From assembly GCF_046119375.1 (NCBI RefSeq), contig NW_027362769.1, positions 393,142,001 to 393,206,000 on the forward strand: 64,000 bases of DNA, read 5' to 3'. Position 1 is the stretch's first letter; each line of letters opens with the position of its first letter. The position numbers and the translations under genes were made by a program. Below are positions 121 to 64,000 of the stretch, one piece after another. Below the pieces are notes generated by a model. The model saw only the letters and a list, made by a program, of their open reading frames with translations, was not told the DNA's origin and did no database searches. Source of the stretch: Phyllobates terribilis. Its lineage: Eukaryota.

Positions 121-2997
<2,877 letters not shown>

Positions 2998-5291: not shown

Positions 5292-5324
<33 letters not shown>

Positions 5325-21518: not shown

Positions 21519-21583
21519 CCTCACAGGGGGGTCGTTATCATCGGGCCTGGATGATATAATGTACGGCCCGATATATCCCCCAC

Positions 21584-33100: not shown

Positions 33101-36100
33101 TCTGTAGGGGGCAGCGTTGATCTGTAGGGGGGCAGCATTTATCTGTGGGGGGCAGCATTGATCTGTAGTCTGTAGGGGGCAGTATTGATCTTTGGGGCCA
33201 GCATTGATCTGTAGGGGGCAGCGTTGATCTGTTGGATGCAGTGTTGATCTGTGGGGGGCAGCGTTGATCTATGGGGCAACGTTGATCTATGGGGGCAAGG
33301 TTGATCTATGGGGGCAACGTGGATCTGTGGGGGGCTGTGTTGATCTGTGGGGGGCAGCGTTGATCTATGGGGCAACGTTGATCTATGGGGGCAACGTTGA
33401 TCTATGGGGGCAATGTTGATCTATGGGGGCAGCGTTGATCTATGGGGGGCAGCGTTGATCTGTGGGGGCAGTGTTGATCTGTGGGGGGTCGCTTTGATCT
33501 GTGGGGGCAGTGTTGATCTTTGGGGGACAGCGTTGATCTGTAGGGGGCAGTGGTGATTTGTAGGGGGCAGCATTGATCTGTTGGGGGCAGTGTTGATCTG
33601 TGGAGGGCAGAGTTGATCTGTGGAGGGCAGCGTTGATCTGTAGGGGGGCAGTGTTGATCTGCAGGGGGCAGTGTTGATCTGTGGAGGGCAGTGTTGATCT
33701 GCGGGGGGCAGCGTTGATCTGTGGAGGGCAGCGTTGATCTGTAGGGGGGCAGCGTTGATCTGTAGGGGGCAGCGTTGATCTGTAGGGGGCAGTGTTAATT
33801 TGTGGAGGGCAGCGTTGATCTGTAGGGGACAGCATTAATCTGTAGGGGACAGCGTTGATCTGTAGGGGTCAGCGTTGATCTGTTGGGGGCAGTGTTGATC
33901 TGTGGGGGACAGCGTTGATCTATGGGGCAACGTTGATCTATGGAAGCAATGTTGATCTGTGGGGGGCAGCGTTGATCTGTGGGGGCAGTGTTGATCTGTG
34001 TGGGACAGCGTTGATCTGTAGGGGGCAGTGGTGATCTGTAGGGGGCAGCGTTGAACTGTTGGGGGCAGTGTTGATCTGTGGAGGGCAGCGTTGATCTGTG
34101 GAGGGCAGCATTGATCTGTGGAGGGCAGCGTTGATCTATGGAGGGCAGTGTTGATCTGTGGGGGGCAGCGTTGATCTGTGGGGGGCAATGTTGATCTATG
34201 GGGGGCAGCGTTGATCTGTGGGGGCAGTGTTGATCTGTGGGGGACAGCGTTGATCTGTAGGGGGCAGTGGTGATCTGTAGGGGGCAGTGTTGATCTGTAG
34301 GGGGCAGCGTTGATCTGTAGGGGGGCAGCATTTATCTGTGGGGGGCAGCATTGATCTGTAGTCTGTAGGGGGCAGTATTGATCTTTGGGGCCAGCATTGA
34401 TCTGTAGGGGGCAGCGTTGATCTGTTGGATGCAGTGTTGATCTGTGGGGGGCAGCGTTGATCTATGGGGCAACGTTGATCTATGGGGGCAACGTTGATCT
34501 ATGGGGGCAACGTGGATCTGTGGGGGGCTGTGTTGATCTGTGGGGGGCAGCGTTGATCTATGGGGCAACGTTGATCTATGGGGGCAACGTTGATCTATGG
34601 GGGCAATGTTGATCTATGGGGGCAGCGTTGATCTGTGGGGGGCAGCGTTGATCTGTGGGGGCAGTGTTGATCTGTGGGGGGTCGCTTTGATCTGTGGGGG
34701 CAGTGTTGATCTTTGGGGGACAGCGTTGATCTGTAGGGGGCAGTGGTGATTTGTAGGGGGCAGCATTGATCTGTTGGGGGCAGTGTTGATCTGTGGAGGG
34801 CAGAGTTGATCTGTGGAGGGCAGCGTTGATCTGTAGGGGGGCAGTGTTGATCTGCAGGGGGCAGTGTTGATCTGTGGAGGGCAGTGTTGATCTGCGGGGG
34901 GCAGCGTTGATCTGTGGAGGGCAGCGTTGATCTGTAGGGGGGCAGCGTTGATCTGTAGGGGGCAGCGTTGATCTGTAGGGGGCAGTGTTAATTTGTGGAG
35001 GGCAGCGTTGATCTGTAGGGGACAGCATTAATCTGTAGGGGACAGCGTTGATCTGTAGGGGTCAGCGTTGATCTGTTGGGGGCAGTGTTGATCTGTGGGG
35101 GACAGCGTTGATCTATGGGGCAACGTTGATCTATGGAAGCAATGTTGATCTGTGGGGGGCAGCGTTGATCTGTGGGGGCAGTGTTGATCTGTGTGGGACA
35201 GCGTTGATCTGTAGGGGGCAGTGGTGATCTGTAGGGGGCAGCGTTGAACTGTTGGGGGCAGTGTTGATCTGTGGAGGGCAGCGTTGATCTGTGGAGGGCA
35301 GCATTGATCTGTGGAGGGCAGCGTTGATCTATGGAGGGCAGTGTTGATCTGTAGGGAGCAGCGTTGATCTGTTGAGTGCAGTGTTGATCTGTGGGGGGCA
35401 GCGTTGATCTATGGGGCAACGTTGATCTATGGGGGCAACGTTGATCTATGGGGGCAACGTTGATCTATGGGGGCAATGTTGATCTATGGGGCAACGTTGA
35501 TCTGCAGGGGGGCAGCGTTGATTTGTGGAGGGCAGCGTTGATCTGTAGGGGGGGCACTATTAATCTGTAGGGTGCAGTGTTGATCTGTGAAGGGCAGCGT
35601 TGATCTGTAGGGGGGCAGTGTTGATCTGTGGGGGGCAGTGTTGATCTGTGGGGGGCAGTGTTGATCTGTGGGGGGCAGCGTTGATCTGCGGGGGGCAGCG
35701 TTGATCTGCAGGAGGCAGTGTTGATCTGTAGGGGGCAGTCTTGATCTGTGGAGGCCAGTGTTGATCTGCGGGAGGCAGCGTTGATCTGTAGGGGGGCAGT
35801 GTTGATCTGTAGGGGGGCAGGGTTGATCTGTAGGGGGGCAGCGTTGATCTGTAGGGGGGCAGCGTTGATCTGTAGGGGGCAGCTTTGATCTGTAGGGGAC
35901 AGCGTTGATCTGTAGGGGACAGCATTGATCTGTGGGGGCAACGTTGATCTGTAGGAGGCAGCATTGATCTGTAGGGGGCTGCGTTGATCAGTTGGGGGCA
36001 GTGTTGATCTGTGGGGGACAGCGTTGATCTATGGGGCAACAATGATCTATGGGGCAATGTTGATCTATGGGGCAGCGTGGATCTGTGGGGGGCAGTGGTG

Positions 36101-43935: not shown

Positions 43936-46900
43936 TCAGAGGCCTCCGGAGGAGGTATGAGGGGGCAGATACCAGGGCGGCGTACACACCTGCTGCAGGA
44001 AGGGGGCGTGCAGGGCAGAAAGGGGGTAACTCAGTCTGACTGGCGGAGAGGCCCAGGAGCCCATAAAATAGGAGGGAACGGGGGGCAAATTAGAGGCCGA
44101 GGGAGGAAACGGCGCCAAAGCGGAAGGAGGCGGATGAGCCAACCTGTAAATGAAGAGGAGCGGTGAGAGAGCGGCGAAGCAGGAGGGAGGCGACAAGTGC
44201 AGAGACAACGACCTACCTGTGACCTCCAGGGCAGGAGCGGGGGCTGTAGGCCGTCACTGACTGCGCAGAGGGGGCTGCCCACATTGGTCTCTGTGTTATG
44301 GGGTCCCACTGTACAAGACTGTCCGTCCGGTGTGCCCGCTCCTCTCTGTCCTCTGTAGCTTCCCTGTGTGTCAAGTCTCTGCCCTGGGCCGTTCGTGGGG
44401 TGTCTCTGGGACTCTCTTTTCCTGGTGTCTGTCTCATTTCTCTTTCCTCCTCTCTCTTTACTGTGACCTCCCGCCTCTCCTCTTCCTCCGCTGCGCTCTT
44501 CTCTGCTGATACAAGACGTCGCTCCACAACCTCATCTACTGGACTCTCCACTCTGCTGTCTCTCTGAGCGACTGTCAGCTCCTCTGCACTCTCTCTATGT
44601 CTCTTCATAACTGAAAAAAGACAGAAAACATAATCACTGTATATTATATATAGCCGAGCGTCCCCGCAATATAATAATGTAATGTAGGTACACAGTGACT
44701 GCACCGGCAGAATAGAGAGTGCAGCTCTGGAGTATAATGCAGGATGTAACTCAGGATCAGTAATGTAATGTATGTACACAGTGACAGCACAAGCAGAATA
44801 GTGAGTGCTGCTCTGGGGTATAATACAGGATGTAACTCAGGATCAGTAATGTAATGTATGTACACAGTGACTGCACAAGCAGAATAGTGAGTGCAGCTCT
44901 GGAGTATAATACAGGATGTAACTAAGGATCAGTAATGTAATGTATGTACACAGTGACTGCACCAGCAGAATAGTGAGTGCAGCTCTGGAGTATAATACAG
45001 GATGTATCTCAGGATCAGTAATGTATGTACACAGTGACTGCACCAGCAGAATAGTGAGTGCAGCTCTGGAGTATAATACAGGATGTAACTCAGGATCAGT
45101 AATGTAATGTATGTACACAGTGACTGCACCAGCAGAATAGTGAGTGCAGCTCTGGAGTATAATACAGGATATAACTCAGGATCAGTAATGTAATGTATGT
45201 ACATAGTGACTGCACCAGCAGAATAGTGAGTGCAGCTCTGGAGTATAATACAGGATATAACTCAGGATCAGTAATGTAATGTATGTACATAGTGACTGCA
45301 CCAGCAGAATAGTGAGTGCAGCTCTGGAGAGTAATACAGGATGTAACTCAGGATCAGTAATGTAATGCATGTACACAGAGACTCCACCAGCAGAATAGTG
45401 AGTGCAGCTCCGGAGTATAATACAGGATGTAACTCAGGATCAGTAATGTAATGTATGTACACAGTGACTGCACCAGCAGAATAGTGAGTGCAGCTCTGGA
45501 GTATAATACAGGATGTAACTCAGGATCAGTAATGTAATGTATGTACACAGTGACTGCACCAGCAGAATAGTGAGTGCAGCTCTGGAGAGTAATACAGGAT
45601 GTAACTCAGGATCAGTAATGTAATGTATGTACACAGTGACTGCACCAGCAGAATAGTGAGTGCAGCTCTGGAGTATAATACAGGATGTAACTCAGGATCA
45701 GTAATGTAATGTATGTACACAGTGACTCCACCAGCAGAATAGTGAGTGCAGCTCTGGAGTATAATACAGGATGTAACTCAGGATAAGTAATGTAATGTAT
45801 GTACACAGTGACTGCACCAGCAGAATAGTGAGTGCAGCTCTGGAGTATAATACAGGATGTAACTAAGGATCAGTAATGTAATGTATGTACACAGTGACTG
45901 CACCAGCAGAATAGTGAGTGCAGCTCTGGAGTATAATACAGGATGTAACTCAGGATCAGTAATGTAATGTATGTACACAGTGACTGCAGCAGCAGAATAG
46001 TGAGTGCAGCTCTGGAGTATAATACAGGATGTAACTCAGGATCAGTAATGTAATGTATGTACACAGTGACTGCACCAGCAGAATAGTGAGTGCAGCTCTG
46101 GAGTATAATAAAGGATGTATCTCAGGATTAGTAATGTAATGTATGTACACAGTGACTGCACCAGCAGAATAGTGAGTGCAGCTCTGGGGTATAATACAGG
46201 AGGTAACTCAGGATCACTAATGTAATGTATGTACACAGTGACTGCACCAGCAGAATAGTGAGTGCAGCTCTGGAGGATAATACAGGAGGTAACTCAGGAT
46301 CAGTAATGTAATGTATGTACACAGTGACTGCACCAGCAGAATAGTGAGTGCAGCTCTGGAGTATAATACAGGATGTAACTCAGGATTAGTAATGTATGTA
46401 CACAATGACTGCACCAGCAGAATAGTGAGTGCAGCTCTGGAGTATAATACAGGATGTAACTCAGGATCAGTAATGTAATGTATGTACACAGTGACTGCAC
46501 CAGCAGAACAGTGAGTGCAGCTCTGAAGTATAATACAGGATGTAACTCAGGATTAGTAATGTATGTACACAGTGACTGCACCAGCAGAATAGTGAGTGCA
46601 GCTCTGGAGTATAATACCGATGTAAGTCAGGATCAGTAATGTAATGTATGTACTGTAAGGTAGCGGTATTGATCATGTTGAGGGGGCACTCACTTCACCG
46701 GGTCAATTAAAGCACTCAAGCCACGTTTTCCAGTAAACTAAAGTCCAGCAGTTTATTACACGTCATAAACTGCTTATAACACAGTCCATCTCAGTGGCTC
46801 GCAGGCATGTTACACATGTAATGTCCTAGAGCCTTTCCAGTGGCAGCTATGCCCGCTTGGCTTTAGATATAGACTTCAGCAAGGTACAACATCAGTGTCC

Positions 46901-49900
46901 ATATAAAGAACCATTTTTACCTTTGCTGGGTCTTAGCTGCTTCTCTCAGCTCGGTTCTGCCACAGCTGTGGCTTTAAGGCTTCCCAGCCGTGGTCTTCAA
47001 GCCACGTGCCTTCCAGGGCAACTGCGTCCCAAACACAGGGATTTAGCCTCTTGCCTCTCCAGGCCTCTCTCTTCCAGCCTCTCCAGGCTAATGGTGTCCC
47101 ACACACAGGGATCAGGCCTCACGCCTTTCACACCTGTTTCAAAACTACCAAGGTTTATATATCAGTCTGTGCGCACAGGACCTGTGATGATGTCACAGTC
47201 ATGTGATCAGTCACCTGAGGGGATGTACATGGTCAGCCAGAACACACCCCCTGGACATTTTAGCAATGCAGTAAGTTGCTGCATTACATATCCCCCCCCT
47301 CTGTTCAAACTTGTGGGGTTGAACACATAATATACACAATCACCTTATAACCCACAGTTCACACAGAGACCATGTACTTGACACTTGCGTTGTCCAGCCC
47401 CTGGAATATTAGTCATCGACATTAACCCATTCCTTAGGGACCTACCATCTGTCATTGTCACTGACTTCGTCAAGTCACCTTTCCGGGTCGTAACCTTGTC
47501 AGACCTCCCCCGCTCCCAGCGGTCAGTCGTAACCTTGTCAGACCTTCCCCGCTCCCAGCGGTCAGTCGTAACCTTGTCAGACCTCCCCCGCTCCCAGCGG
47601 TCAGTCATACAGCGGTGTGACTCACATGCCCTGGTATCTAAGGTCCGGTTCGACTCCGTACTGTCCCGTACTCTATTGGGTCGTTTGTATGGGCCACTTA
47701 GACGTGAGTTACTGGAGGTCTCACTACCTCTAAACCCACGTCCACTACTCTCAGGACATCTTGAAAGGTCCCTAACTCCAGCTATAGCTGTTCTGTTATT
47801 TAGGGGGCCCTTTCTCTGTCTGGTCTCACAATTTCTAGACGGCTGCCACCTTCTGCCGCTCAGGCGATGCTGTCTATCCACTCGCAGTCTGGCGAGATTC
47901 AACTGTTCTACCTCTCGCAGGTAGATCACTCGGTACTCCATCAGCATGCGTATATATGCAAGATTTTCTTCCGTTTCTACAGCGGAGAATGACACCATGC
48001 CATCTTCATCTGGTATCCAGTCCTGATGATCACGTGGACTGCTTACTTTCACCACACCCGACATCTTTACCATCATCTGCATGGCTCGACCATTTCTCCC
48101 AATGAGCTTTCTCACCAGAGCCTGAGGCACCCGGATGACTTCTTCCCGCAGACTGTGAGCTTTTCTCATAAGCTCCAGTTGTCTAATGGCTTGTTCCGTC
48201 TTCAACCGGAGAAACCGCTTTGTGCGAATACATCGCCAGTGCATTTCACTTAGGATCGCCACCCTCTTCACTGTGACTTCGGTTGTGGACAGGACCACCA
48301 GCCGTTTAGCTTCTGAGGTCGAGTACACCTTTCAGGCTCCCACGGCCTTCTTAAACTCTTCATGCACGGACTCACTGGTGCATTCTGCTCTCAAATCCTC
48401 GGGTACATCTATGAGGCACTTGTACCGAGAGGTTTCTGTCTCACCAGTGGTCTCCAAACGATCATCTGGCTCAGGTTTCAGGGGCAACTGACTTTCAGCT
48501 TCTTCACCCTGTATGCTTCCCCTGAGCTGACTCACAGCTACAAATTCAAGAATTTTCGTCTTGACCACTTCCATTTCATACTTATCTTCTGTTAACACTC
48601 TCTTAGCTCTCCTCAGGTCCACCTTCTCATGGTATAAGGGAGTGAGTGCAACTTGTTTGCCCTTTTCCTTCTCCAAGGAGGCCTCGTTCACTGAGTGATA
48701 CTTTGCCAGGCGACCTTTGAGCTCGACAATTTCTTCCTCTAGTTCAGCTACTCGCCTCTCAGCAGCCCATCTCTGAAGCTCTTCCTGATTCAACTGCTCC
48801 TTTAACAGTAGAGTTCTCTCAGACCTCTCTGTCTCCAATGCGCCCTCTCGGCTCTCAACAGCCAGTCTCTCAAACTTCTCTTGCTTCCAATGGGCTTGTA
48901 GCGACTCCTTGAGCTCCTTGATCTCGGCTCTTACATCCACCGAATCATCCGAGCTCGCCTTATTCGAGGAAGTATCTGTTTCATATCTCCCATCTCCAGT
49001 GGCCAACTCCTGACCCTGGTCTGTGGCTTCTCCGATAGACTCCTCCATCTTTTTCCGCCCAGCTTCCATCTTGCTGATTCTTTCCTTAAGGCACGTCTCT
49101 GCCCTCTGGAGATTATCACTGAATGTCTGTAGCTCCTTCACCTGAGCTTCCAGACCTAGGGTCTTTCTGCGGAGATCATAATTTACATCACGGGTGTCCT
49201 GCAGAGTGGTCTCAACCACTTGGCGCCTGTGCTCTGCATCCGCCTTATCATCCTCTAGTTTTTCCTTAACCTTGAGGAGATCCTCATAGTCTCTCTTAGT
49301 TTGTTGCAGTTCCCTATTGAACTTTTCATGCCTCATTTCTGCCTCTTTCAGGGTGGATAGCTCCCGGTCTCGCTGGTACAGAGAGTCCACCAGCCGCTCC
49401 TTCTCCTGAATTAGAGGCTTTACTTGGTCCTGGAATTGCTGCAGCTCCCTCATTAGTTCACCATGCTCCTTCTTGGATTCACACAGCTCACGGTTGAACT
49501 GTTCGCGCAGTCGTTCTAGGTCTTGATCACGTCCAGAAACTTCATCCTGCAGCGCCCCTTTTAAGGCAGACAGCTCTCTATCCCTCTGGAGTAGACCCTC
49601 ATCCAGCCTTTGCTTCTCCTGCATCAGCTCTAACTGTACCAGGGAGAAATGATCTTTCATCTCGCATAGCTCATCTTCAGACATCGCTTTGTCAAACTGC
49701 AACCGAACAACCTCCTCTTGGGTTCTGCGGAGGTCCTCTTTAATTTTCTGGAACATCTCCTTCCATTTGTTGATTTCCTCGCTGCTTTCCTCCAGTTTTT
49801 GCTGCCCATCACTCTGACGCTGCTGCCTGATAGGCTCCAGCTCTTGGTCATGACTGGCCACCTCCTCTTTCAGGGCTGTCAGATCCTGATCCTCCTGTCT

Positions 49901-52900
49901 CAGTACTGTACCGGAGGTTGCTACTGGCAAGGTCACCTCTTCTTCTGCCTCTAAAGGAGGTTCCACACTTGGAACAAAGGCACACAGCAATACATTTTTT
50001 TTATTTTCACTTTTAGCAAAGACTACAGGAGCAACCTTTTTGTGGCCCTTATGACGTCGACGACGAGAGGGGGACTCTCTCCCCTCATCTAGCCCCTCCT
50101 GACTGAACTCTCTTTCTACTTTCATAGCGTCACCATCAGTTGTGGGGTCTGTGTCACTCCCCATGGTGTCGTGGACCAGCATATCACCTCCCACCTTGAC
50201 GTCAACCCCTTCTACTGGAGCTACCCCGTTATCAACGGTCAAATTGTCATTTTTAGGCCGTACCAACCCACAATCAGTAACAAATTTTGGTTTTCTATAC
50301 TCCACGCTCTTTTGAAAATCCGCCCCCTTTTTAGACTCCGCCCTCTTTTGGACAACCAAACCTAAAGGGGGTACTTTAACAAAAAAAAACGCAACAGTCT
50401 TAGGACCCAGTTCACAACATGTCTTACCACCTCCCTGGGCACTCTGGGATAGTACCGGCGCCACAGGAGAACTCAAGGAATGGTCCGCTGCCACCATTCT
50501 GTAAGGTGCCAACAGCTCCTGCCGTTCCTGCACCAAGTCCTGTTGCCGTTTCTCAAATACCTGCTGTTGTTTTTCAAATACCTGCTGCAGGCACTTTAAT
50601 CGCTCAACAGCTTCAGTCTCATTTGCTGCTCCCTTCACAGCCATCTTTATCAGCTCCTGCATTTCTTCAGGATACTCTATTTTGTTGAAGAGCATTTGCA
50701 GCCGGTCATTTAACCCCTTCTCCATTCCGTCTGGGGATACTGCTCACACCGCTCTCCCCGGAAAAATTTTCGTGGCCACACCAAGCCACAGCAAACCAGG
50801 TTTGAGTGCGACAACAATTTTCGTAACCCCGCCGAGTTACAGCCAGATGCTTTAATCTTCATGGCCCCGCCGAGCCACAGCAAACCAGGTTTGAGTGCGA
50901 CGACAATTTTCGTAACCCCGCCGAGTTACAGCCAGATGCTTTACTCTTCGTGACCCCACCGAGCCACAGCAAGATGCTTGCATCCACGTTCGTCGTCCTG
51001 TGCCATTACCCCTTGCAACCAGGCTGCAGTTGCCCACGTTCTCTAACCAATTGTAAGGTAGCGGTATTGATCATGTTGAGGGGGCACTCACTTCACCGGG
51101 TCAATTAAAGCACGCAAGCCACGTTTTCCAGTAAACTAAAGTCCAGCAGTTTATTACACGTCATAAACTGCTTATAACACAGTCCATCTCAGTGGCTCGC
51201 AGGCATGTTACACATGTAATGTCCTAGAGCCTTTCCAGTGGCAGCTATGCCCGCTTGGCTTTAGACAAGACTTCAGCAAGGTACAACATCAATGTCCATA
51301 TAAAGAACCATTTTTACCTTTGCTGGGTCTTAGCTGCTTCTCTCAGCTCGGTTCTGCCACAGCTGTGGCTTTAAGGCTTCCCAGCCGTGGTCTTCAAGCC
51401 ACGTGCCTTCCAGGGCAACTGCGTCCCAAACACAGGAATTTAGCCTCTTGCCTCTCCAGGCCTCTCTCTTCCAGCCTCTCCAGGCTAATGGTGTCCCACA
51501 CACAGGGATCAGGCCTCACGCCTTTCACACCTGTTTCAAAACTACCAAGGTTTATATATCAGTCTGTGCACATAGGACCTGTGATGATGTCACAGTCATG
51601 TGATCAGTCACCTGAGGGGATGTACATGGTCAGCCAGAACACACCTCCTGGACATTTTAGCAATGCAGCAAGGCGCTGCATTACAGTACACAATGACTGA
51701 AAAAGCAGAATAGTGAGTGCAGCTCTGGAGTATAATACAGGATGTAACTCAGGATCAGTAATGTAATGTATGTACACAGTGACTGAAAAAGCAGAATAGT
51801 GAGTGCAGCTCTGAAGTATAATACAGGATGTAACTCAGGATCAGTAATGTATGTACACAGTGACTGCACCAGCAGAATAGTGAGTGCAGCTCTGGAGTAT
51901 AATACAGGATGTAACTCAGGATCAGTAATGTAATGTATGTACACAGTGACTGCACCAGCAGAATAGTGAGTGCAGCTCCGGAGTATAATCCAGGATGTAA
52001 CTCAGGATCAGTAATGTAATGTATGTACACAGTGACTGCACCAGCAGAATAGTGAGTGCAGCTCTGGAGGATAATACAGGAGGTAACTCAGGATCAGTAC
52101 AGGATCAGTAATGTAATGTATGTACACAGTGACTGCACCAGCAGAATAGTGATTGCAGCTCTGGAGTATAATACAGGATGTAACTCAGGATCAGTAATGT
52201 AATGTATGTACACAGTGACTGCACCAGCAGAATAGTGAGTGCAGCTCTGGAGTATAATACAGGATGTAACTCAGGATCAGTAATGTAATGTATGTACACA
52301 GTGACTGAAAAAGCAGAATAGTGAGTGCAGCTCTGGAGTATAATACAGGATGTAACTCAGGATCAGTAATGTATGTACACAGTGACTGCACCAGCAGAAT
52401 AGTGAGTGCAGCTCTGGAGTATAATACAGGATGTAACTCAGGATCAGTAATGTAATGTATGTACACAGTGACTGCACCAGCAGAATAGTGAGTGCAGCTC
52501 CGGAGTATAATCCAGGATGTAACTCAGGATCAGTAATGTAATGTATGTACACAGTGACTGCACCAGCAGAATAGTGAGTGCAGCTCTGGAGGATAATACA
52601 GGAGGTAACTCAGGATCAGTACAGGATCAGTAATGTAATGTATGTACACAGTGACTGCACCAGCAGAATAGTGATTGCAGCTCTGGAGTATAATACAGGA
52701 TGTAACTCAGGATCAGTAATGCAATGTATGTACACAGTGACTGCACCAGCAGAATAGTGAGTGCAGCTCTGGAGTATAATACAGGATGTAACTCAGGATC
52801 AGTAATGTAATGTATGTACACAGTGACTGCACCAGCAGAATAGTGAGTGCAGCTCTGGAGTATAATACAGGATGTAACTCAGGATCAGTAATGTAATGTA

Positions 52901-55900
52901 TGTACACAGTGACTGCACCAGCAGAATAGTGAGTGCAGCTCCGGAGTATAATCCAGGATGTAACTCAGGATCAGTAATGTAATGTATGTACACAGTGACT
53001 GCACCAGCAGAATAGTGATTGCAGCTCTGGAGTATAATACAGGATGTAACTCAGGATCAGTAATGTAATGTATGTACACAGTGACTGCACCAGCAGAATA
53101 GTGATTGCAGCTCTGGAGTATAATACAGGATGTAACTCAGCATGAGTTTAAGTGTGAAATAAGGGAATCATGTTGTAATGTCCGGTCATTTAGTGCAGAT
53201 GATCTCGCGCTCTCGGACTGACCTGTTGATCCATCTCCGTCCGGTCTCAGCCTTTGGTGTCTCTTTCTTGGATTGCTGCTAAAATATAGAATTTTTTTTA
53301 CTGTTATTTTGTGTAAAGTTTCTCCTTAATAAACGATTCCGCAATCTAAACATTATAGGGGCAGTCACATTAGGGGGCAGACACCACCCAGAGACTGATA
53401 TTGATTGTTGGTCCAGTCTGTTTCATCCTATCGTGTCAGTAGGGGGCGACACTTACTTTTCCTGCTGACTCTTGAAATATTTGATTCCTTTTGCGAATGG
53501 ATTTTCTTCTATTTTCAGCAAGGAGAGCTGCAGAGGAGAGGGAGAACAGGTGAGAGGAGGGGCTAATGGTAGTGGGAGGAGACAGTGATAGAGGGAGGAG
53601 CCATGAAACTTGGATTTTATAGGAGCCCAAAGCACTCTAAGGGACTGTTCCCATCGTCAGAAACGGGTGTTGTTAAATAGAGCTTATAAATACAAGCGAT
53701 TTTGCAATTTACAGCTTATTAATATTTCCAGCCGTTCTGGAGATATGAACACTTTAGTTTACAGCTCGTTGCTATGGAGACCGACCACCGATTGTGCACA
53801 AGCTCTTTTATTCTGAGCTTGTAAGCGCTGTTTTAAAGCTGGACAGCATTTCTGGAGCGCGCTGTGACCTCCTATTCTCGGCCAGCTTCAGCACAGTGCT
53901 TACAAGCTCGTCAGCAGTGGTGGTCGGTCTCCTAGGCAACAAACTATAAACAAAAGTGTTAATATCTCATGAACGGCTGCAAATTTTAACAAACTGTAAA
54001 TTGCAAAAGTGGTTGTCCGACAATATCCATCTATGAAGACACAAATAACCTCTTAAAGGGGGAGTCCATACACAAGTAAGGAACCCAGCTGACCTTTGGA
54101 TTCTGGTAGCTGGTGACCGCTATGAAGGACGTCTCTGGGAAGGAGATGGAGGAGGCAGGCCGGGCGCGGGGTCCATTATTAGATGTGGGGATGATGAATA
54201 ATCGCAGGTAGTAACGGTGCATGGACTGCAGGACGATCTGAGGAGGAAAGATCATTAGAGATCATGATGGCCACCATGAGGGTATCAGGTCCGTCCTGGT
54301 GGGGGCACCCTGCCGGCACAATAGTTATCAATTTTTAACGATTTTACGACACTAGGTGGCGCCACCCCCGTCATCTCTATGGACACATCTCCGCCATACC
54401 TGTCCTCCCTGGCTCAGGGTGTTGTTGGTCAGTCGGATCCTGTTGAAGCAGATGGGCCTCTCCATCCATCGGTGACCAGGGGCTGGGGATTCAGGGTGGA
54501 GGTAGAGGCGGGTGGGGGGTCCTGGCTCTGCCCTGCCGCTCATACTCCAGGTCCCGTCACGCCACTTGTAGCGGTTCTCACCGTCAGGAACGGCCTGGAC
54601 GCAGAGACAGTAGAGACCATGCGGGTCCAGGCCGGTCAAAGAGACCGAAAACTCCGGGAACATCCGCCTGTCGGGACAAGACGGACAGTCAGTCTCGTCC
54701 CCCCGAACTGGGAGGCTCAACACAGCAGGTTCCAGTCCGATGCGGAGTGACAGCCATTACCGGCCACAATTACTGTGCCTGCATGGGTTGCAATCACTGC
54801 AATGTCAGTCTTCACTGTGGTTCCGGCATTCTGTTCATGAAACAGGAAGCTCAGGATGAACATCACACACTTACCGCCCATTTTTGGTCAGTATCATTTC
54901 TGTACCCACAGTATTAAACTTCTCCCATAATTCCCTGTTCTCCAATTGGGCAGAGATTTGTGGAGCGGCCGTTGCTGGCGATCCCGGAGGAGAACAATAT
55001 GGCAGAGAGAGATAATATCCAGTGGGATGAGGAAACTTTGCACCTGAATGAAGCAGAAGAGACGTCCAATGTCACTAATGGAGTCGGCGAAACACCCGGC
55101 TAAATATTGACACAAGGAGAAGGTGACCTGAGGTTACCCGCAATTCACACATCGCTGCCATGTTTGCCCAGGAATCGACCTGTCCCGAGCTGAGCACTAC
55201 AACTCCCAGCATAACACACCTGTCAGGACTTGTAGTGACAACTGGACAGAAGAGACCTGCAGACAGCCGGGGAGGTGACACATATGGCCGCTTTTACAAC
55301 TTCTCAAATGGTTCTCAAAGTCCCAAGCAAATACTAAGCTGACACCACACAACAATGTGGAGGGGCAGAGAGTTTTATATTTTGTCACAAAATCTCATTT
55401 TCATCCATCGCTGCGATACAGATCAGCACTTTATGGCACCTAGGCCTCAACTGCCAAAAAGGACTAAAAAGAAGACGTTGCCCCTAGCAACCAGTCACAG
55501 CGCAGCTTTCATTCTGTAAACAGCTCTGGTGAAATGAAAGCTGCGCTATGATTGGTCGCTAACGGGCAAGAAAGACATCTCCGCATTTAGTCAGTTTTCA
55601 TAAGTTACGCCCAATATTTTGGTGTTAAGTCTTCTCAGAAAGCTGTGCGCCCTGACATCCGAGGTAAAGAAGTATATACAGTATACACAGTATATATACA
55701 GACAATACTACATTCTGTGGTGTTACATAGGACTGCAGGTGACATCTACTACATTATCTGTACTCAGAGAGTTATCACTGTGTTATCTGTGGTGTTACAT
55801 AGGACTGCAGGTGACATCTACTACATTATCTGTACTCAGAGAGTTATCACTGTGTTATCTGTGGTGTTACAAAGGACTGCAGGTGACATCTACTATATTA

Positions 55901-58900
55901 TCTGTGCTCAGAGAGTTATCACTATGTTATCTGTGGTGTTACATAGGACTGCAGGTGACATCTACTATATTATCTGTACTCAGAGAGTTATCACTGTGTT
56001 ATCTGTGGTGTTACATAGGACTGCAGGTGACATCTACTATATTATCTGTACTCAGAGAGTTATCACTGTGTTATCTGTGGAGTTACATAGGACTGCAGGT
56101 GACATCTACTACATTATCTGTACTCAGAGTTATCACTGTGTTATCTGTGGTGTTACATAGGACTGCAGGTGACATCTACTACATTATCTGTACTCAGAGA
56201 GTTATCACTGTGTTATCTGTGGTGTTACATAGGACTGCAGGTGACATCTACATTATCTGTACTCAGAGAGTTATCACTGTGTTATCTGTGGTGTTACATA
56301 GGACTGCAGGTGACATCTACTACATTATCTGTACTCAGAGAGTTATCACTGTGTTATCTGTGGTGTTACATAGGACTGCAGGTGACATCTACATTATCTG
56401 TACTCAGAGAGCTATCACTGTGTTATCTGTGGTGTTACATAGGACTGCAGGTGACATCTACTACATTATCTGTACTCAGAGTTATCACTGTGTTATCTGT
56501 GGAGTTACATAGGACTGCAGGTGACATCTACTACATTATCTGTACTCAGAGTTATCACTGTGTTATCTGTGGTGTTACATAGGACTGCAGGTGACATCTA
56601 CTACATTATCTGTACTCAGAGAGTTATCACTGTGTTATCTGTGGTGTTACATAGGACTGCAGGTGACATCTACTACATTATCTGTACTCAGAGAGATATC
56701 ACTGTGCTATCTGTGGTGTTACATAGGACTGCAGGTGACATCTACTACATTATCTGTACTCAGAGAGTTATCACTGTGTTATCTGTGGTGTTACATAGGA
56801 CTGCAGGTGACATTTACTACATTATCTGTACTCAGAGTTATCACTGTGTTATATGTGGAGTTACATAGGACTGCAGGTGACATCTACTACATTATCTGTA
56901 CTCAGAGAGTTATCACTGTGTTATCTGTGGTGTTACATAGGACTGCAGGAGACATCTACTACATTATCTGTACTCAGAGAGTTATCACTGTGTTATCTGT
57001 GGTGTTACATAGGACTGCAGGTGACATCTACATTATCTGTACTCAGAGAGTTATCACTGTGTTATCTGTGGTGTTACATAGGACTGCAGGTGACATCTAC
57101 TACATTATCTGTACTCAGAGAGATATCACTGTGTTATCTGTGGTGTTACATAGGACTGCAGGTGACATCTACATTATCTGTACTCAGAGAGCTATCACTG
57201 TGTTATCTGTGGTGTTACATAGGACTGCAGGTGACATCTACTACATTATCTGTACTCAGAGTTATCACTGTGTTATCTGTGGAGTTACATAGGACTGCAG
57301 GTGACATCTACTACATTATCTGTACTCAGAGTTATCACTGTGTTATCTGTGGTGTTACATAGGACTGCAGGTGACATCTACTACATTATCTGTACTCAGA
57401 GAGTTATCACTGTGTTATCTGTGGTGTTACATAGGACTGCAGGTGACATCTACTACATTATCTGTACTCAGAGAGATATCACTGTGCTATCTGTGGTGTT
57501 ACATAGGACTGCAGGTGACATCTACTACATTATCTGTACTCAGAGAGTTATCACTGTGTTATCTGTGGTGTTACATAGGACTGCAGGTGACATTTACTAC
57601 ATTATCTGTACTCAGAGTTATCACTGTGTTATCTGTGGTGTTACATAGGACTGCAGGTGACATCTACTACATTATCTGTACTCAGAGAGTTATCACTGTG
57701 TTATCTGTGGTGTTACATAGGACTGCAGGTGACATTTACTACATTATCTGTACTCAGAGTTATCACTGTGTTATCTGTGGTGTTACATAGGACTGCAGGT
57801 GACATCTACTACATTATCTGTACTCAGAGAGTTATCACTGTGTTATCTGTGGTGTTACATAGGACTGCAGGTGACATCTACTACATTATCTGTACTCAGA
57901 GTTATCACTGTGCTATCTGTGGTGTTACATAGGACTGCAGGTGACATCTACTACATTATCTGTACTCAGAGAGTTATCACTGTGTGATCTGTGGTGTTAC
58001 ATAGGACTGCAGGTGACATCTACATTATCTGTACTCAGAGAGTTATCACTGTGTTATCTGTGGTGTTACATAGGACTGCAGGTGACATCTACTACATTAT
58101 CTGTACTCAGAGTTATCACTGTGCTATCTGTGGTGTTACATAGGACTGCAGGTGACATCTACTACATTATCTGTACTCAGAGAGTTATCACTGTGTGATC
58201 TGTGGTGTTACATAGGACTGCAGGTGACATCTACATTATCTGTACTCAGAGAGTTATCACTGTGTTATCTGTGGTGTTACATAGGACTGCAGGTGACATC
58301 TACTACATTATCTGTAATCAGAGAGTTATCACTGTGTATCTGTGGTGATACATAGGACTGCAGGTGACATCTACTACATTATCTGTACTCAGAGAGTTAT
58401 CACTGTGTTATCTGTGGTGTTACATAGGACTGCAGGTGACATCTACTACATTATCTGTACTCAGAGAGCTATCACTGTGTTATCTTTGGTGTTACATAGG
58501 ACTGCAGGTGACATCTACATTATCTGTACTCAGAGAGTTATCACTGTGTTATCTGTGGTGTTACATAGGACTGCAGGTGACACCTACTACATTATCTATA
58601 CTCAGAGAGTTATCACTGTGTTATCTGTGGTGTTACATAGGACTGCAGGTGACATCTACTACATTATCTGTAATCAGAGAGTTATCACTGTGTTATCTGT
58701 GGTGTTACCTAGGACTGCAGGTGACATCTACTACATTATCTGTACTCAGAGAGTTATCACTGTGTTATCTGTGGTGTTACATAGGACTGCAGGGGACATC
58801 TACTACATTATCTGTACTCAGGGAGTTATCACTGTGTTATCTGTGGTGTTACATAGGACTGCAGGGGACATCTACTACATTATCTGTAATCAGAGAGTTA

Positions 58901-60354
58901 TCACTGTGTTATCTGTGGTGTTACATAGGACTGCAGGTGACATCCACTACATTATCTGTACTCAGAGAGTTATCACTGTGTTATCTGTGGTGTTACATAG
59001 GACTGCAGGTGACATCTACTACATTATCTGTACTCAGAGAGTTATCACTGTGTTATCTGTGGTGTTACATAGGACTGCAGGTGACATCTATCACATTATC
59101 TGTACTCAGAGAGTTATCACTGTGTTATCTGTGGTATTACATAGGACTGCAGGTGACATCTACTACATTATCTGTACTCAGAGTTATCACTGTGTTATCT
59201 GTGGTGTTACATAGGACTGCAGGTGACATCTACTACATTATCTGTACCCAGAGAGTTATCATTGTGTTATCTGTGGTGTTACATAGGACTGCAGGTGACA
59301 TCTACATTATCTGTACTCAGAGTTATCACTGTGTTATCTGTGGTGTTACATAGGACTGCAGGTGTCATCTACTACATTATCTGTACTCAGAGTTATCACT
59401 GTGTTATCTGTGGTGTTACATAGGACTGCAGGTGACATCTATCACATTATCTGTACTCAGAGAGTTATCACTGTGTTATCTGTGGTATTACATAGGACTG
59501 CAGGTGACATCTACTACATTATCTGTACTCAGAGAGTTATCACTGTGTTATCTGTGGTGTTACATAGGACTGCAGGTGACATCTACTACATTATCTGTAC
59601 TCAGAGAGCTATCACTGTGTTATCTGTGGTGTTACATAGGACTGCAAGTGACATCTACTACATTATCTGTACTCAGAGAGTTATCACTGTGTTACCTGTG
59701 GTATTACATAGGACTGCAGGTGACATCTACTACATTATCTGTATTCAGAGAGTTATCACTGTGTTATCTGTGGTGTTACATAGGACTGCAAGTGACATCT
59801 ACTACATTATCTGTACTCAGAGAGTTATCACTGTGTTATCTGTGGTATTACATAGGACTGCAGGTGACATCTACTACATTATCTGTACTCAGAGAGTTAT
59901 CACTGTGTTATCTGTGGTGTTACATAGGACTGCAGGTGACATCTACTACATTATCTGTATTCAGAGAGTTATCACTGTGTTATCTGTCGTGTTACATAGG
60001 ACTGCAAGTGACATCTACTACATTATCTGTACTCAGAGAGTTATCACTGTGCTATCTGTGGTGTTACATAGGACTGCAGGTGACATCTACTACATTATCT
60101 GTACTCAGAGAGTTATCACTGTGTTATCTGTGGTGTTACATAGGACTGCAGGTGACATCTACTACATTATCTGTACTCTGTGATCATAGGACACCATACA
60201 GTTTAGTGCCCCTTCCCTTGTGCCACACCTGTACACACATAGCACACACATAGCGCACACATATACCGCGGCGGTGTCCTGGGTACTCACCTATGTCTCT
60301 CCTGAGCTCGGGTGGGGTGGGCAGGCAGCAGCCCAGTATTCCTGTTGAGTGCAT
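43936..60354 (-). CDS. Divergent Tbx6-subfamily T-box transcription factor (probably Tbx6r-like). Exons 60354-60291 (tentative), 55043-54875, 54667-54400, 54237-54094, 53527-53457, 53278-53223, 44610-44217, 44143-43936
   Basis: [24 protein letters not shown]|[35 protein letters not shown]|[23 protein letters not shown]|..[11 protein letters not shown], followed by a basic (RKR), an acidic and a Pro-rich tail. All junctions are GT-AG and in phase. The T-box exons are certain; exon 1 and the 3' exons are less so. Confidence 0.85.
44680..46653. repeat. 86-bp satellite array, left of the LTR insertion
   Basis: Unit gtaatgtaatgtatgtacacagtgactgcaccagcagaatagtgagtgcagctctggagtataatacaggatgtaactcaggatca. 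The 64-aa ORFs recur every 86 bp. Confidence 0.97.
46654..47288 (-). repeat. 3' LTR (635 bp)
   Basis: Adjacent to the PPT. Carries a sense-strand AATAAA at 46757-46752. Confidence 0.95.
47345..50725 (-). CDS. Chimeric LTR-element ORF (about 1126 codons, one in-frame TGA at 48334-48332): unknown or gag-remnant N-terminus + cingulin-derived coiled coil + unidentified coiled coil + FXR1-derived KH0/KH2/NES/C-terminal region
   Basis: Track ORFs 48332-50725 and 47345-48328 are in the same frame (..KKAVGA*KVYSTSE..). Cingulin-like: [79 protein letters not shown]1-like: [67 protein letters not shown]. Confidence 0.8.
51052..51685 (-). repeat. 5' LTR (634 bp)
   Basis: Followed on the minus strand by a 2-nt spacer and the TGG-initiated PBS-like sequence. 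Confidence 0.95.
51686..53140. repeat. 86-bp satellite array, right of the LTR insertion
   Basis: Same unit as 44680-46653, resuming in register after the TSD. Contains a 522-bp higher-order duplication, marked by ggatcagtacaggatcagt at about 52092 and about 52614. Confidence 0.97.
53637..54056. mobile_element. Palindromic MITE in T-box intron
   Basis: Long internal inverted repeat (ttgcaatttacag..gttgctatggagaccgaccacc vs ggtggtcggtctcctaggcaac..ctgtaaattgcaa). (C/T)TAA-like ends. Confidence 0.65.
55478..55572. mobile_element. Short palindromic MITE core
   Basis: ttgccc.tagcaaccagtcacagcgcagctttcatt ... aatgaaagctgcgctatgattggtcgcta.cgggcaa inverted arms. Confidence 0.55.
55715..60182. repeat. 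72-bp satellite array (69/70-bp variants), about 4.5 kb
   Basis: Unit gtgttacataggactgcaggtgacatctactacattatctgtactcagagagttatcactgtgttatctgtg. The period is divisible by 3, which explains the long ORFs. Confidence 0.97.
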
Positions 60355-60389
60355 GATGTGATCTGACACCCAGGACATGGGGGGAGAGC

Positions 60390-60395
60390 TTTATA
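60390..60395 (-). promoter_or_regulatory. Candidate TATA box for the T-box gene
   Basis: TATAAA on the minus strand about 36 bp before the ATG at 60354, in an exon ending at a strong AG|GTGAGT donor (60291/60290) in the phase needed for exon 55043. Confidence 0.45.
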
Positions 60396-61399
60396 CAGTG
60401 GGAGGAGAGACCCCATACTGCTCAGAGGGGGCGAGCAGAAGTCCCATCATTGTCTCTTTTCACTTACACATGGGGCCATAGAGTGCAAGCTCCTATGACA
60501 AGATCCTTATGTCACACCCTGAAGCTCCCACTAATTATAAATGTGCGGGTCATTAGTGTATCATTGTGACCCTGCACATGGGGGGCTGTCTGTACACAGG
60601 GTAATTCTATGTTTAGATTCACCTAATCTCCATCATTACTCAATTAACACCTTGTTGCCCGCCCCCCTTATAAGACTGCGACCCTTCCCCAGCTGTTGTC
60701 ACCACATCTGCTATGAGGTCTCCTTGTGTCTGCACTGATGCATCCTATTTCCTAGAAGTCCCACTGTTCCAAAAAAGGTTTAGGAATTCCCATTTTTTGG
60801 ATTGGGCAGGTGGGGGGGATAGTGACTACCAGTTTACCCGGAGCAATAAATAGTGCAATGATATCATGAGGGGGTCTATTCTACATGGCTGGACCACTAA
60901 GTGGTCATCAGAAGGTCGATGATGTCCTAGGGGACAGAATTGGACACTATCACAATGGACCGCTAGGGACTATATGGATCTTATTAGACCACCATGGACT
61001 GTATGGGACCAGTAGAATTAAAGATTATCTTACTGGGCCACAAAGGATTATATCAAACCACTGAATGGGACACTATCTCACTAGTCCACCATGGACTATT
61101 TAGAAACACAAGAGTTTAGACACCATCTTAGTGGACCACTAGGGACTGGATTGGACTGGTCGAATTTAGAGACTATCTCACTGAGCCAACGGGAGCTGGG
61201 TAGTATCTCAGTGGATCAACACAATGATAGATTAGGAGTAGATTGGGTCACCATACAAAAATTAGATAGTCAATGGGTTCCATGTTACACAAGATGGTTT
61301 ACCAGCAGGTCAGTAGGCATTACTAGATCACCAGGGAGCAGGTGAAGCTCACTTATCTCTGGTCACAGGGACACATTCTGGACATCTCAGGGCTATTAT

Positions 61400-64000
61400 C
61401 GGTGCTGGTCATGGAGGCATGGTCTGAGTATCTTAGGGCTATGGACAGAGATAGTCACGGCTGGTCATTTATCTGTGGTCATGGAGGCATGGTCTGGGCA
61501 TTTTGGGGCTATGATTAGGACTGGTCACTGAGCTGTGATCATAGAGGCATGGTCTGGGCATTTCGAGGCTATAGTCAGTGCTGGTCACTGAACTGTGGTC
61601 ATGGTGGCATGGTCTGGGCATTTGGAGGCTATAGTCGGGGATGGTCATTGAGCTGTGGTCATGGAGGCATAGTCTGGGCACTTTGGGGCTATTGCCAGGT
61701 CTGGTCACTGAGTTGTGGTCATGGAGGCATTGTCTGGGCACCTTGGGTCTATCAGGGATGATCACTGAGCTGTGGTCATGGAGGCATTGTCTGGGCACCT
61801 TTAGCTATAATCAGGGCTAGTCACTGAGTGTGGTCATGGAGGCATGGTCTGGACACCTGGGTCTATCAGGAATGATCACTGAGCAGTGGTCATGGAAGCA
61901 TGGTCTGGGCACTTTGGGGCTATAGTCAGGGATGGTCACTGACTTGTGGTCATGGAGGCATGGTCTGGGCACCTTCGGTCTATCAGGGATGATCACTGAG
62001 CTGTGGTCATGGAGGCATGGTCTGGGCACCTTGAGCTATAATCAGGGCTAGTCACTGAGTGTGGTCATGGAGACATGGTCTGGGCACCTGGGTCTATCAG
62101 GAATGATCACTGAGCTGGTGTCATGGAGGCATGGTCTGGGCACCTTGGGTCTATCAGGGATGATCACTGAGTGTGGTCATGGAGGCATGGTCTGGGCACC
62201 TTGGGTCTATCAGGGATGGTCACTGAGTGTGGTCATGGAGGCATGGTCTGGGCACCTTGAGCTATAATCAGGGCTGGTCACTGCGTGTGGTCATGGAGGC
62301 ATGGTCTGGGCACCTTGGGTCTATCAGGGATGATCACTGAGTGTGGTCATGGAGGCATGGTCTGGGCACCTTCGGTCTATCAGGGATGGTCACTGAGTGT
62401 GGTCATGGAGGCATGGTCTGGGCACCTTGAGCTATAATCAGGGCTGGTCACTGCGTGTGGTCATGGAGGCATGGTCTGGGCACCTGGGTCTATCAGGAAT
62501 GATCACTGAGCTGTGGTCATGGAAGCATGGTCTGGGCACCTTGAGCTATAATCAGGGATGGTCACTGACTTGTGGTCATGGAGGCATTGTCTGGGCACCA
62601 GGGTCTTTCAGGGATGATCACTGAGCTGTGGTCATGGAAGCATGGTCTGGGCACTTTGGGGCTATAGTCAGGGATGGTCACTGACTTGTGGTCATGGAGG
62701 CATTGTCTGGGCCCCTTCGGTCTATCAGGGATGATCACTGAGCTGTGGTCATGGAGGCATGGTCTGGGCACCTGGGTCTATCAGGAATGATCACTGAGCT
62801 GTGGTCATGGAGGCATGGTCTGGGCACCTTGAGCTATAATCAGGGCTGGTCACTGCGTGTGGTCATGGAGGCATGGTCTGGACACCTTGGGTCTATCAGG
62901 GATGATCACTGAGTGTGGTCATGGAGGCATGGTCTGGGCACCTTGGGTCTATCAGGGATGGTCACTGAGTGTGGTCATGGAGGCATGGTCTGGGCACCTT
63001 GGGTCTATCAGGGATGGTCACTGAGTGTGGTAATGGAGGCATGGTCTGGGCACCTTGAGCTATAATCAGGGCTGGTCACTGCGTGTGGTCATGGAGGCAT
63101 GGTCTGGGCACCTTGAGCTATAATCAGGGCTGGTCACTGCGTGTGGTCATGGAGGCATGGTCTGGGCACCTGGGTCTATCAGGAATGATCACTGAGCTGT
63201 GGTCATGGAAGCATGGTCTGGGCACCTTGAGCTATAATCAGGGATGGTCACTGACTTGTGGTCATGGAGGCATTGTCTGGGCACCAGGGTCTTTCAGGGA
63301 TGATCACTGAGCTGTGGTCATGGAAGCATGGTCTGGGCACTTTGGGGCTATAGTCAGGGATGGTCACTGACTTGTGGTCATGGAGGCATTGTCTGGGCAC
63401 CTTCGGTCTATCAGGGATGATCACTGAGCTGTGGTCATGGAAGCATGGTCTTGGCACCTTGAGCTATAATCAGGGATGGTCACTGACTTGTGGTCATGGA
63501 GGCATTGTCTGGGCACCAGGGTCTTTCAGGGATGATCACTGAGCTGTGGTCATGGAAGCATGGTCTGGGCACTTTGGGGCTATAGTCAGGGATGGTCACT
63601 GACTTGTGGTCATGGAGGCATTGTCTGGGCACCTTCGGTCTATCAGGGATGATCACTGAGCTGTGGTCATGGAAGCATGGTCTGGGCACCATGAGCTATA
63701 ATCAGGGCTAGTTACTGAGTGTGGTCATGGAGGCATGGTCTGGGCACCATGAGCTATAATCAGGGCTAGTCACTGAGTGTGGTCATGGAGGCATGGTCTG
63801 GGCACCTTCAGTCTATCAGGAATGATCACTGAGCTGTGGTCATGGAGGCATGGTCTGGGCACCTGGGTCTATCAGGAATGATCACTGAGCTGTGGTCATG
63901 GAGGCATGGTCTGGGCACCTGGGTCTATCAGGAATGATCACTGAGCTGTGATCATGGAGGCATGGTCTGGGCACCATGAGCTATAATCAGGGCTAGTCAC
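61400..64000. repeat. 57-59-bp satellite array running off the window end
   Basis: Unit gtcactgagctgtggtcatggaggcatggtctgggcaccttgggtctatcagggatg. About 230-bp higher-order repeats after about 63200. Confidence 0.95.

Follow-up and report, generated by a model that had tools for sequence, protein, structure and literature searches.

A 64,000-nt stretch of the Phyllobates terribilis genome (assembly GCF_046119375.1, contig NW_027362769.1, positions 393,142,001 to 393,206,000; hereafter the window) contains on its minus strand a structurally complete, recently inserted long terminal repeat (LTR) element without gag-pol. The element carries one long frame that, judged by similarity, draws on at least three host sources (cingulin, the mitochondrial Lon protease LONP1 and the FMR1/FXR family) and includes two orphan segments. 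It belongs to a mobile family that has inserted repeatedly at new sites with different 4-bp duplications. The frame was held open by selection in the transposing lineages, and purifying selection at the amino-acid level is detectable in the FXR-derived part only. For the observations as a whole, the best explanation, and in our judgement a likely one, is a non-autonomous LTR element that forms a small family of the Phyllobates lineage and arose via LTR-mediated retroposition.

Structure of the element and its mosaic frame

The LTRs, priming sites and flanking repeats are located as follows (window coordinates).

46654-47288, minus strand: 3' LTR, 635 bp, TG..CA ends, TATATAA at 47155-47161, AATAAA at 46752-46757
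51052-51685, minus strand: 5' LTR, 634 bp, TATATAA at 51552-51558, AATAAA at 51150-51155
51032-51049, minus strand: primer-binding site (PBS)-like site beginning TGG, TGGTTAGAGAACGTGGGC, 2 nt after the 5' LTR
47292-47302, minus strand: polypurine tract (PPT) with a G-run, AGAGGGGGGGG, 3 nt upstream of the 3' LTR
44675-46653, unstranded: left part of a satellite array with an 86-bp unit (Tandem Repeats Finder period 86, 94% matches), ending with GTAC
51686-53147, unstranded: right part of the array, same 86-bp unit, starting with the right GTAC (51686-51689)

The element was assigned to the minus strand because the coding frame, PBS and PPT all point that way. The two LTRs are direct repeats with 11 differences over 635 aligned positions (98.27% identity). 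In the orientation of the element both start with TGTAATG and finish with CCTTACA, and each has TATATAA at LTR position 128 and AATAAA at about position 531. The target-site duplication (TSD) GTAC is found at 46650-46653 and 51686-51689. The consensus of the 86-bp satellite contains one GTAC at the insertion point, and removal of the element together with one GTAC rebuilds the unit. The restored unit amounts to an empty site, so that a chance 4-mer and an assembly join are both ruled out. An earlier reading of the window from its letters only (the sequence-only reading) had described an LTR pair of about 98% identity, the GTAC duplication, the PPT and the PBS-like site, all of which were recovered here. 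The window is free of N runs and contains the element only once, and an Rfam search of the element matched no structured RNA.

The interior measures 3,763 bp, of which 3,381 nt (~90%) form a single frame running on the minus strand from 50725 to 47345. The frame has one internal TGA, a terminal TAA and no frameshift, in agreement with the intronless 3.38-kb frame with one stop that had been reported before. Its parts are listed below; residue numbers refer to the 797-aa first open reading frame (ORF) piece before the TGA.

49907-50725, minus strand: orphan N-terminus, 273 aa (aa 1-273), ATG at 50723-50725 in good Kozak context
48995-49906, minus strand: cingulin rod fragment (aa 274-577), corresponding to host cingulin aa 571-951 from spliced mRNA
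48638-48994, minus strand: middle orphan segment (aa 578-696), matched by family copies alone, no Pfam family
48503-48637, minus strand: LONP1 fragment, 45 aa (aa 697-741), ~70% identity to frog LONP1
48332-48334, minus strand: internal stop TGA within KH0, a cysteine codon in the intact P. terribilis copy (L001)
47345-48331, minus strand: second part of the frame, 328 sense codons plus TAA (47345-47347), with the rest of KH0, KH2 and the tail
48167-48439, minus strand: FMRP-type KH0, split by the stop (Pfam KH_9, PF17904, profile positions 5-85)
47915-48157, minus strand: KH2 (Pfam KH_1), E 8e-14 to residues 64-144 of the FMR1 structure 2QND
47663-47929, minus strand: FXR/FMR C-terminal core, sub-threshold (Pfam FXMRP1_C_core)
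47487-47606, minus strand: 39-bp tandem repeat in the FXR-derived tail, 3.1 copies, each unit coding for 13 aa with RG
50765-50972, minus strand: 89-bp tandem repeat, 2.3 copies, in the untranslated leader between PBS and ATG

Pfam found no reverse transcriptase, protease, RNase H, integrase or gag domain in the frame, consistent with the lack of visible gag-pol motifs noticed earlier. The other frames of the orphan N-terminus and leader (eight stretches) and of the middle orphan segment (one stretch) gave no Pfam match, so that the orphan N-terminus has no Pfam family in any frame. An exhaustive phmmer search with the orphan N-terminus returned 0 matches among 1.84 billion representative proteins; its homologues lie within the element family only.

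The cingulin fragment matched P. terribilis cingulin by BLASTP with an E value of 1e-131 and ~80% identity in aligned columns. The match covers aa 274-577, close to the residues (about 276-575) where cingulin rod motifs had been recognized from the sequence. Relative to host residues 571-951 the fragment has four internal deletions, all in frame; its cingulin content is limited to these rod residues and includes no head domain, full rod or tail. The middle orphan segment is probably a coiled coil. A protein search with region 578-797 gave LONP1 and a family copy as the sole matches, and the LONP1 fragment matched human LONP1 PDB structures at E 5e-8. The sequence-only reading had proposed a cargo from at least two host mRNAs, cingulin and FXR1; both parts stand at the level of cingulin and the FMR1/FXR family, and the LONP1 piece, which had been overlooked, brings the sources to at least three.

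Similarity to the FMR1/FXR family begins at the start of KH0 (aa 763) and extends through the end of the second piece. KH0 was detected as PF17904 across the stop, reached E 1e-25 in the protein of the intact copy (P0001) and matched the FMRP structure 4QVZ at E 1e-20. KH2, also predicted earlier, retains its GxxG loop (GRNG in the window copy, GRSG in L001). For KH0 and KH2 the PDB contains FMR1 alone, and the donor is assigned to family level. KH2 starts within about four residues of the end of KH0, indicating that KH1 has been deleted; KH1 is absent from the segment, which also gave no Agenet (Tudor) match. KH2 is followed by a helix and then the RG-containing tail. The C-terminal core profile (PF12235) scored 19-23 bits, below its cut-off of 29.6. 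A word-indexed protein search with the 327-aa FXR piece, whose length window leaves out FXR proteins, gave no match, a metagenome scan found no relative, and an AlphaFold2 model of KH0-KH2 from the intact copy, computed from a single sequence, had a pLDDT of 53, too poor for a fold search. The 39-bp repeat is present in 3 copies in the window element, 2 in L001 and 1 each in the family members L002 and L003, and is thus an in-frame expansion in the younger sub-lineage.

Copies, capture and selection

A protein search identified four P. terribilis proteins as mosaic copies (P0001, P0002, P0004 and P0009; GCA_046119375.1). The public annotation lists P0001 (998 aa, with KH0), which in the NCBI annotation is the protein of the intact L001 gene, as 'uncharacterized protein' and the other three as 'cingulin-like'. 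Three further loci contain full LTR-interior-LTR elements with the same segment order as the window copy. The window copy, L001, L002 and L003 were used for comparison; P0002 was left out (its gene model spans 110 kb).

L001: LTR 909 bp (LTR at 4774-5682), LTR identity 98.8%, TSD CTAC, frame intact with 1004 codons
L002: LTR ~560 bp (LTR at 5424-5988), LTR identity 94.3%, TSD TCCC/TGCC (1 mismatch), two frameshifts (one in a T-run) and stops
L003: LTR ~800-840 bp (LTR at 5156-5994), LTR identity 90.8%, TSD ATAT, three frameshifts and stops
L003, 60241-60996, minus strand: solo LTR of L001-like subtype with its own TSD ATAC

The mobile family that the sequence-only reading had postulated is therefore present: besides the window copy it comprises a solo LTR and three copies flanked by LTRs, and the 4-bp duplications differ between them. 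The older copies carry 2-3 frameshifts and 1-2 stops apiece. Read from its sequence, the solo LTR is evidence for LTR-LTR recombination in the family or its helper. LTR length ranges from 555 to 909 bp across copies, apparently through internal tandem duplications of roughly 75-190 bp, and between sub-lineages the LTRs (70-89% identity) are far more diverged than the coding interior (~86%). The PBS and PPT design is kept in all four copies. The PBS of L001 is the variant TGGTGGAGAATGCGGGCA, which may resemble the 3' end of a vertebrate tRNA-Ala; neither the window nor the five loci contain tRNA genes for comparison with the PBS. In Dendrobates and Ranitomeya the protein search recovered the true cingulins and no mosaic 'cingulin-like' proteins.

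The L002 copy sits within an integrin alpha gene model, on the opposite strand. Around broken copies the annotation places gene models with several exons that span up to 110 kb, and a practical consequence for annotation is that retroelement copies are listed publicly as 'cingulin-like' or 'uncharacterized protein' genes. The L001 element (4774-10007) has 300 private substitutions in 3,154 ungapped interior columns, compared with 86-102 in the other copies, together with LTRs of 98.8% identity. Its substitution spectrum is strand-asymmetric, with 74 A>G versus 25 T>C. This pattern could reflect A-to-I editing of the RNA before reverse transcription, or homogenisation of the LTRs of an older insertion.

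The source of the cingulin piece was examined by mapping the exons of the P. terribilis cingulin gene at locus L004. The captured piece runs from mid-exon (aa 550-620) to mid-exon (aa 929-1014) and crosses six exon junctions without any intron sequence, indicating capture from a processed transcript, as had been suggested. Protein phylogeny of the cingulin segment unites the four element copies with 100/98 support, joins them to P. terribilis cingulin as sister group (95/92) and places both within Dendrobatidae (100/100); the element clade branches off after the split from Dendrobates and Ranitomeya. DNA identity of the cingulin segment to the P. terribilis coding sequence is 95.2% for L002, 90.0% for L003, 89.2% for the window copy and 83.7% for L001; over the same codons P. 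terribilis and D. tinctorius cingulin are 91.6% identical. With the tree rooted on D. tinctorius, the element clade departs 0.016 substitutions per site ago, of ~0.045 per lineage, which dates the capture to roughly a third of the time since the Phyllobates/Dendrobates split. These comparisons place the capture in the Phyllobates lineage, after that split. The age of the window copy (half the LTR divergence, ~0.9%) equals ~5-6% of the per-lineage synonymous divergence (dS 0.31 / 2), a rough yardstick that assumes similar rates. By these estimates the capture is clearly older than the window insertion yet recent on the frog time scale. An old capture, as first proposed, is thus upheld in so far as it predates insertion; it is not very old, since it follows the Phyllobates/Dendrobates split and L002 is still 95.2% identical to the host coding sequence.

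Of ~2,990 aligned coding sites, 408 distinguish the window copy from L001 (86.5% identity; ~13.5% differ). Both are recent insertions, and most of this divergence must therefore predate insertion. Between the two only 1 stop is observed where 15-17 are expected, and the minimum in 2000 spectrum-preserving simulations was 5. Upstream of the FXR part the two share 637 codons, with 0 stops observed versus ~11 expected (minimum 2-3 in 3000 trials). The ~12 indels that separate the two copies are all multiples of three. The single stop of the window copy fits the approximately one stop expected from its post-insertion divergence.

The strength of amino-acid constraint was estimated on the four copies with a GY94+F3X4 codon model (kappa ~3). 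Omega and twice the log-likelihood difference against omega = 1 (2dlnL) were as follows.

Whole frame: omega 0.77, 2dlnL 10.1
Upstream of the FXR part: omega 0.96, 2dlnL 0.18
N-terminus: omega 1.00, 2dlnL 0.0
Cingulin: omega 0.89, 2dlnL 0.45
Middle segment plus Lon: omega 1.04, 2dlnL 0.04
FXR part: omega 0.47, 2dlnL 22.1
KH0-KH2: omega 0.375, 2dlnL 17.9
FXR C-terminal part: omega 0.64, 2dlnL 4.05

A Nei-Gojobori dN/dS of 0.55-0.6 overall was superseded by this maximum-likelihood model (0.77, with the part before FXR neutral). Synonymous divergence is alike in the FXR part and upstream of it, and the low omega is therefore not explained by copies being renewed again and again from host mRNA. 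Non-synonymous to synonymous (N:S) changes were then counted on each branch by parsimony and tested by branch-specific spectrum-preserving permutations. Two branches show a deficit of non-synonymous changes: the internal one that the window copy and L001 have in common (15 N : 13 S, P 0.026) and the long one of L001 that predates its insertion (26 : 26, P 0.002). The terminal branches of the window copy, L002 and L003 look neutral, and so does the upstream part on every branch. The pre-FXR part of L001 combines a neutral N:S ratio with the absence of any stop, where ~7 are expected. Of the protein-level selection claimed before, the maintenance of an open frame (1 stop versus 15-17) is borne out, and constraint on amino acids is narrowed to the FXR part (omega 0.47).

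Proposed origin, alternatives and known systems

The anatomy of the element together with an established mechanism (PMC5131818) suggests an origin by template switching. The reverse transcriptase of an autonomous LTR element or endogenous retrovirus would have switched template onto co-packaged host mRNAs, with gag-pol replaced by pieces of cingulin, LONP1 and an FMR1/FXR protein and two orphan segments, in a single frame under the LTR promoter. The chimera itself, as its copies show, has retained LTRs, PBS and PPT and moved repeatedly to new sites. No polymerase is encoded by the element, which implies a helper acting in trans; this helper or a relative would still supply Gag-Pol. The 4-bp duplication and the 2-nt PBS spacer are compatible with a retrovirus-like or Ty3/gypsy-like helper. 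The large ORFs of the 66-kb L003 locus belong to LINE, Copia-type and Tc1/mariner elements, and none shares the family LTR. The selection results agree with transposing lineages that need the C-terminal KH module, the upstream 760 codons, drifting at omega ~1, being merely translated through, and with copies that decay neutrally after insertion. The window copy itself is probably no longer able to make the full protein, given its stop.

The fusion protein combines long coiled coils with KH0-KH2 and an RG-rich tail; it would be translated from the element's own RNA and bind it, aiding stability, translation or recruitment of this RNA into helper particles. With low confidence, we suggest that it is a coiled-coil-multimerised KH RNA-binding protein, a host-derived substitute for the RNA-binding role of Gag; a decoy effect on host FXR-dependent silencing would be an alternative function. 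A more specific scheme may be entertained but is doubtful. In it the capsid gene was swapped for a host RNA-granule module, and the KH0-KH2 protein binds its own RNA in cis and is needed for mobilisation by the helper. Selection would then act on the parasite's borrowed domain and not for the host, and the module would either replace Gag's RNA-binding role or serve as a dominant-negative FXR decoy that blunts germline silencing.

Several points weigh against the explanation preferred here. The selection tests are coarse, being based on four copies alone with mixed pre- and post-insertion branches, and the A>G excess of L001 may reflect bursts of RNA editing rather than time, which complicates arguments from rates. 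The upstream three quarters of the frame show no amino-acid constraint, leaving a role for the cingulin coiled coil unproven, and stop avoidance in this part might merely let ribosomes reach the KH part. The sole pointer to trans-mobilisation is the absence of pol, and no helper was found. Template-switch capture is argued from anatomy and mechanism. The function proposed for the protein is read from its sequence and commands low confidence, and L001 could alternatively be a host-retained gene.

The last possibility can be widened to a host-domesticated gene, in which one locus (e.g. L001) was kept for the benefit of the frog and its LTRs were homogenised by gene conversion. L001 is intact, shows the strongest N:S deficit on its own long branch (26:26) and has LTRs of 98.8% identity with the most diverged interior of all copies, which speaks for domestication. 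The deficit is also seen on the internal branch common to the window copy and L001 (15:13, P 0.026), and the window copy is a separate recent insertion of the same sub-lineage whose frame was open until its single stop; moreover, L001 keeps the full LTR-PBS-PPT structure and a TSD. The neutral N:S ratio without stops (~7 expected) in the pre-FXR part of L001 would fit selection for read-through in either scenario. We judge domestication to be unlikely. Slightly less so, but still improbable, is a defective endogenous retrovirus with a gag-host fusion, in which the orphan 273 aa are a diverged gag remnant and particle entry occurs via Gag-Gag contacts. The retrovirus-like architecture (2-nt PBS spacer, G-rich PPT, 4-bp TSD, TATA and AATAAA in the LTR) agrees with such a fusion, and the orphan N-terminus opens the ORF just past the leader, the usual place of gag. 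This segment, however, belongs to no Pfam gag family, has 0 homologues among 1.84 billion representative proteins and evolves at omega ~1.0, which is unexpected for a part needed in particle entry; a very diverged gag could still escape such searches.

If the cargo were neutral, the element would be a dead chimeric retrocopy inside a non-autonomous LTR element, its frame open merely from youth. The omega of 0.96 in the pre-FXR three quarters, the stop already present in the window copy and the frameshifts of older copies are in keeping with this, and most described LTR-mediated retrocopies are not known to be functional (PMC5131818). Youth is difficult to reconcile with ~13.5% coding divergence that comes with 1 stop versus 15-17 expected and with every indel in frame. 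The KH region further shows an omega of 0.375 (2dlnL 17.9), and the non-synonymous deficit falls on pre-insertion branches; a neutral cargo is accordingly very unlikely in our view. An assembly artefact, that is, a chimera of unrelated sequences, might be suspected in a satellite-rich region that is hard to assemble, and the sequence-only reading had itself raised it. The exact 4-bp duplication, the 86-bp unit rebuilt on excision and the recurrence of the same mosaic order with LTRs at three other loci of the public assembly leave it a negligible probability.

A non-autonomous, cargo-carrying LTR element thus remains our preferred reading, and it can be compared with several known systems. Acutely transforming retroviruses are replication-defective and helper-dependent, and express from the LTR a fusion with a spliced host gene acquired through template switching. 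They share with the present family the fusion, the spliced host cargo and, as inferred here, the dependence on a helper. They differ in being exogenous, somatic, short-lived and selected for cell proliferation, whereas the present family is endogenous in the germline, has no growth-control gene and shows no detectable gag. LARD and TRIM elements have LTRs, PBS and PPT without pol and are mobilised in trans, with interiors that are non-coding; in the present family a single frame, maintained by selection, takes up 90% of the interior. The FXR-derived part resembles FMR1, FXR1 and FXR2 in the KH0 fold signature, the KH2 with intact GxxG, the following helix and the RG-containing tail, but both Agenet/Tudor domains and KH1 are missing and ~760 aa of unrelated, mostly coiled-coil N-terminus stand instead. 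The element is therefore not a LARD or TRIM, not autonomous, and not a full member of the cingulin or FMR1/FXR protein families.

The closest parallel is maize Bs1, an LTR element that has a hybrid ORF from three host gene fragments (PMC13317346). Bs1 likewise has no pol, a single hybrid frame of mRNA-captured fragments and a low copy number (PMC13317346; cited in PMC5131818), and evidence for maintenance of the hybrid ORF is reported there, too (PMC13317346). Bs1 is a plant element that has kept a recognisable gag-like part and captured a proton ATPase, a xylanase and a glucanase, whereas the present family is amphibian and has no detectable gag. Here constraint falls on a pair of RNA-binding KH domains, suggesting that the module has a part in the biology of the element's own RNA. 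By analogy, the family can be viewed as a vertebrate counterpart of maize Bs1.

LTR-mediated retroposition has been described in Drosophila, mosquito, zebrafish, chicken and mammals (Tan et al. 2016; PMC5131818). The reported cases include multi-parent chimeras and further retroposition as pseudo-LTR elements, and junction microsimilarity at switch points is a hallmark (PMC5131818). They resemble the present elements in having intronless partial host mRNA segments between both LTRs, multiple parents and secondary retroposition, but the animal cases reported are mostly single, young and often polymorphic (PMC5131818). Here we see a diversified family, with up to ~19% DNA divergence in the cingulin segment, and a frame that is demonstrably maintained. 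A search of the literature library found no paper joining FXR1, cingulin and a retrotransposon, and the retrieved titles and abstracts on poison-frog genomes mention no such family. The suggestion of an undescribed retroelement consequently holds for this family, which is new, and not for its class, which is already described (Bs1 in maize, PMC13317346; LTR-mediated retroposition in animals, PMC5131818).

In plants, host-exon shuffling by chimeric LTR elements is well documented; for animals the documented cases are isolated young retrocopies. A vertebrate family that keeps a multi-gene hybrid frame open over many rounds of transposition, with constraint on a KH pair, is unusual. As a tractable case, it lets one ask whether capturing a host protein can benefit a non-autonomous retroelement, and it is an instance of natural exon shuffling through template switching of reverse transcriptase in the giant genome of an amphibian.

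Surrounding sequence

At window 6116-7624 (minus strand), 39 kb away from the element, an ORF of 502 aa without introns encodes the full TRIM architecture (RING, B-box, TRIM coiled coil, PRY and SPRY); it is probably a member of the TRIM/B30.2 families, which are expanded in fish and amphibians. The intervals 11858-46653 and 51686-64000 consist largely of tandem arrays of many unrelated units, with unit lengths of 15, 20, 25, 29, 30, 35, 36, 41, 45, 56/114, 71, 72, 74 and 86 bp; two arrays of the 20-bp unit extend over 4.2 and 6.2 kb. The region is probably heterochromatic, and the long 'ORFs' inside these arrays are repeat artefacts. A 35/36-bp satellite at window 18221-18850 recurs in the flanks of L001 (1-540 and 12557-14643) with 90-94% identity, which places at least two family members in or beside satellite DNA. 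Together with the cingulin tree, this match assigns the window to Phyllobates.

Other mobile elements were found near the L003 copy, namely a LINE ORF2 (endonuclease and reverse transcriptase), a Tc1/mariner transposase and Copia-type gag and pol, with ORF regions at 1038-3962, 32793-33665 and 47662-51509. The same locus has a 615-aa ORF with a cold-shock domain at 20445-22292 (minus strand) and a 435-aa ORF with a BED zinc finger at 12858-14165 (plus strand).

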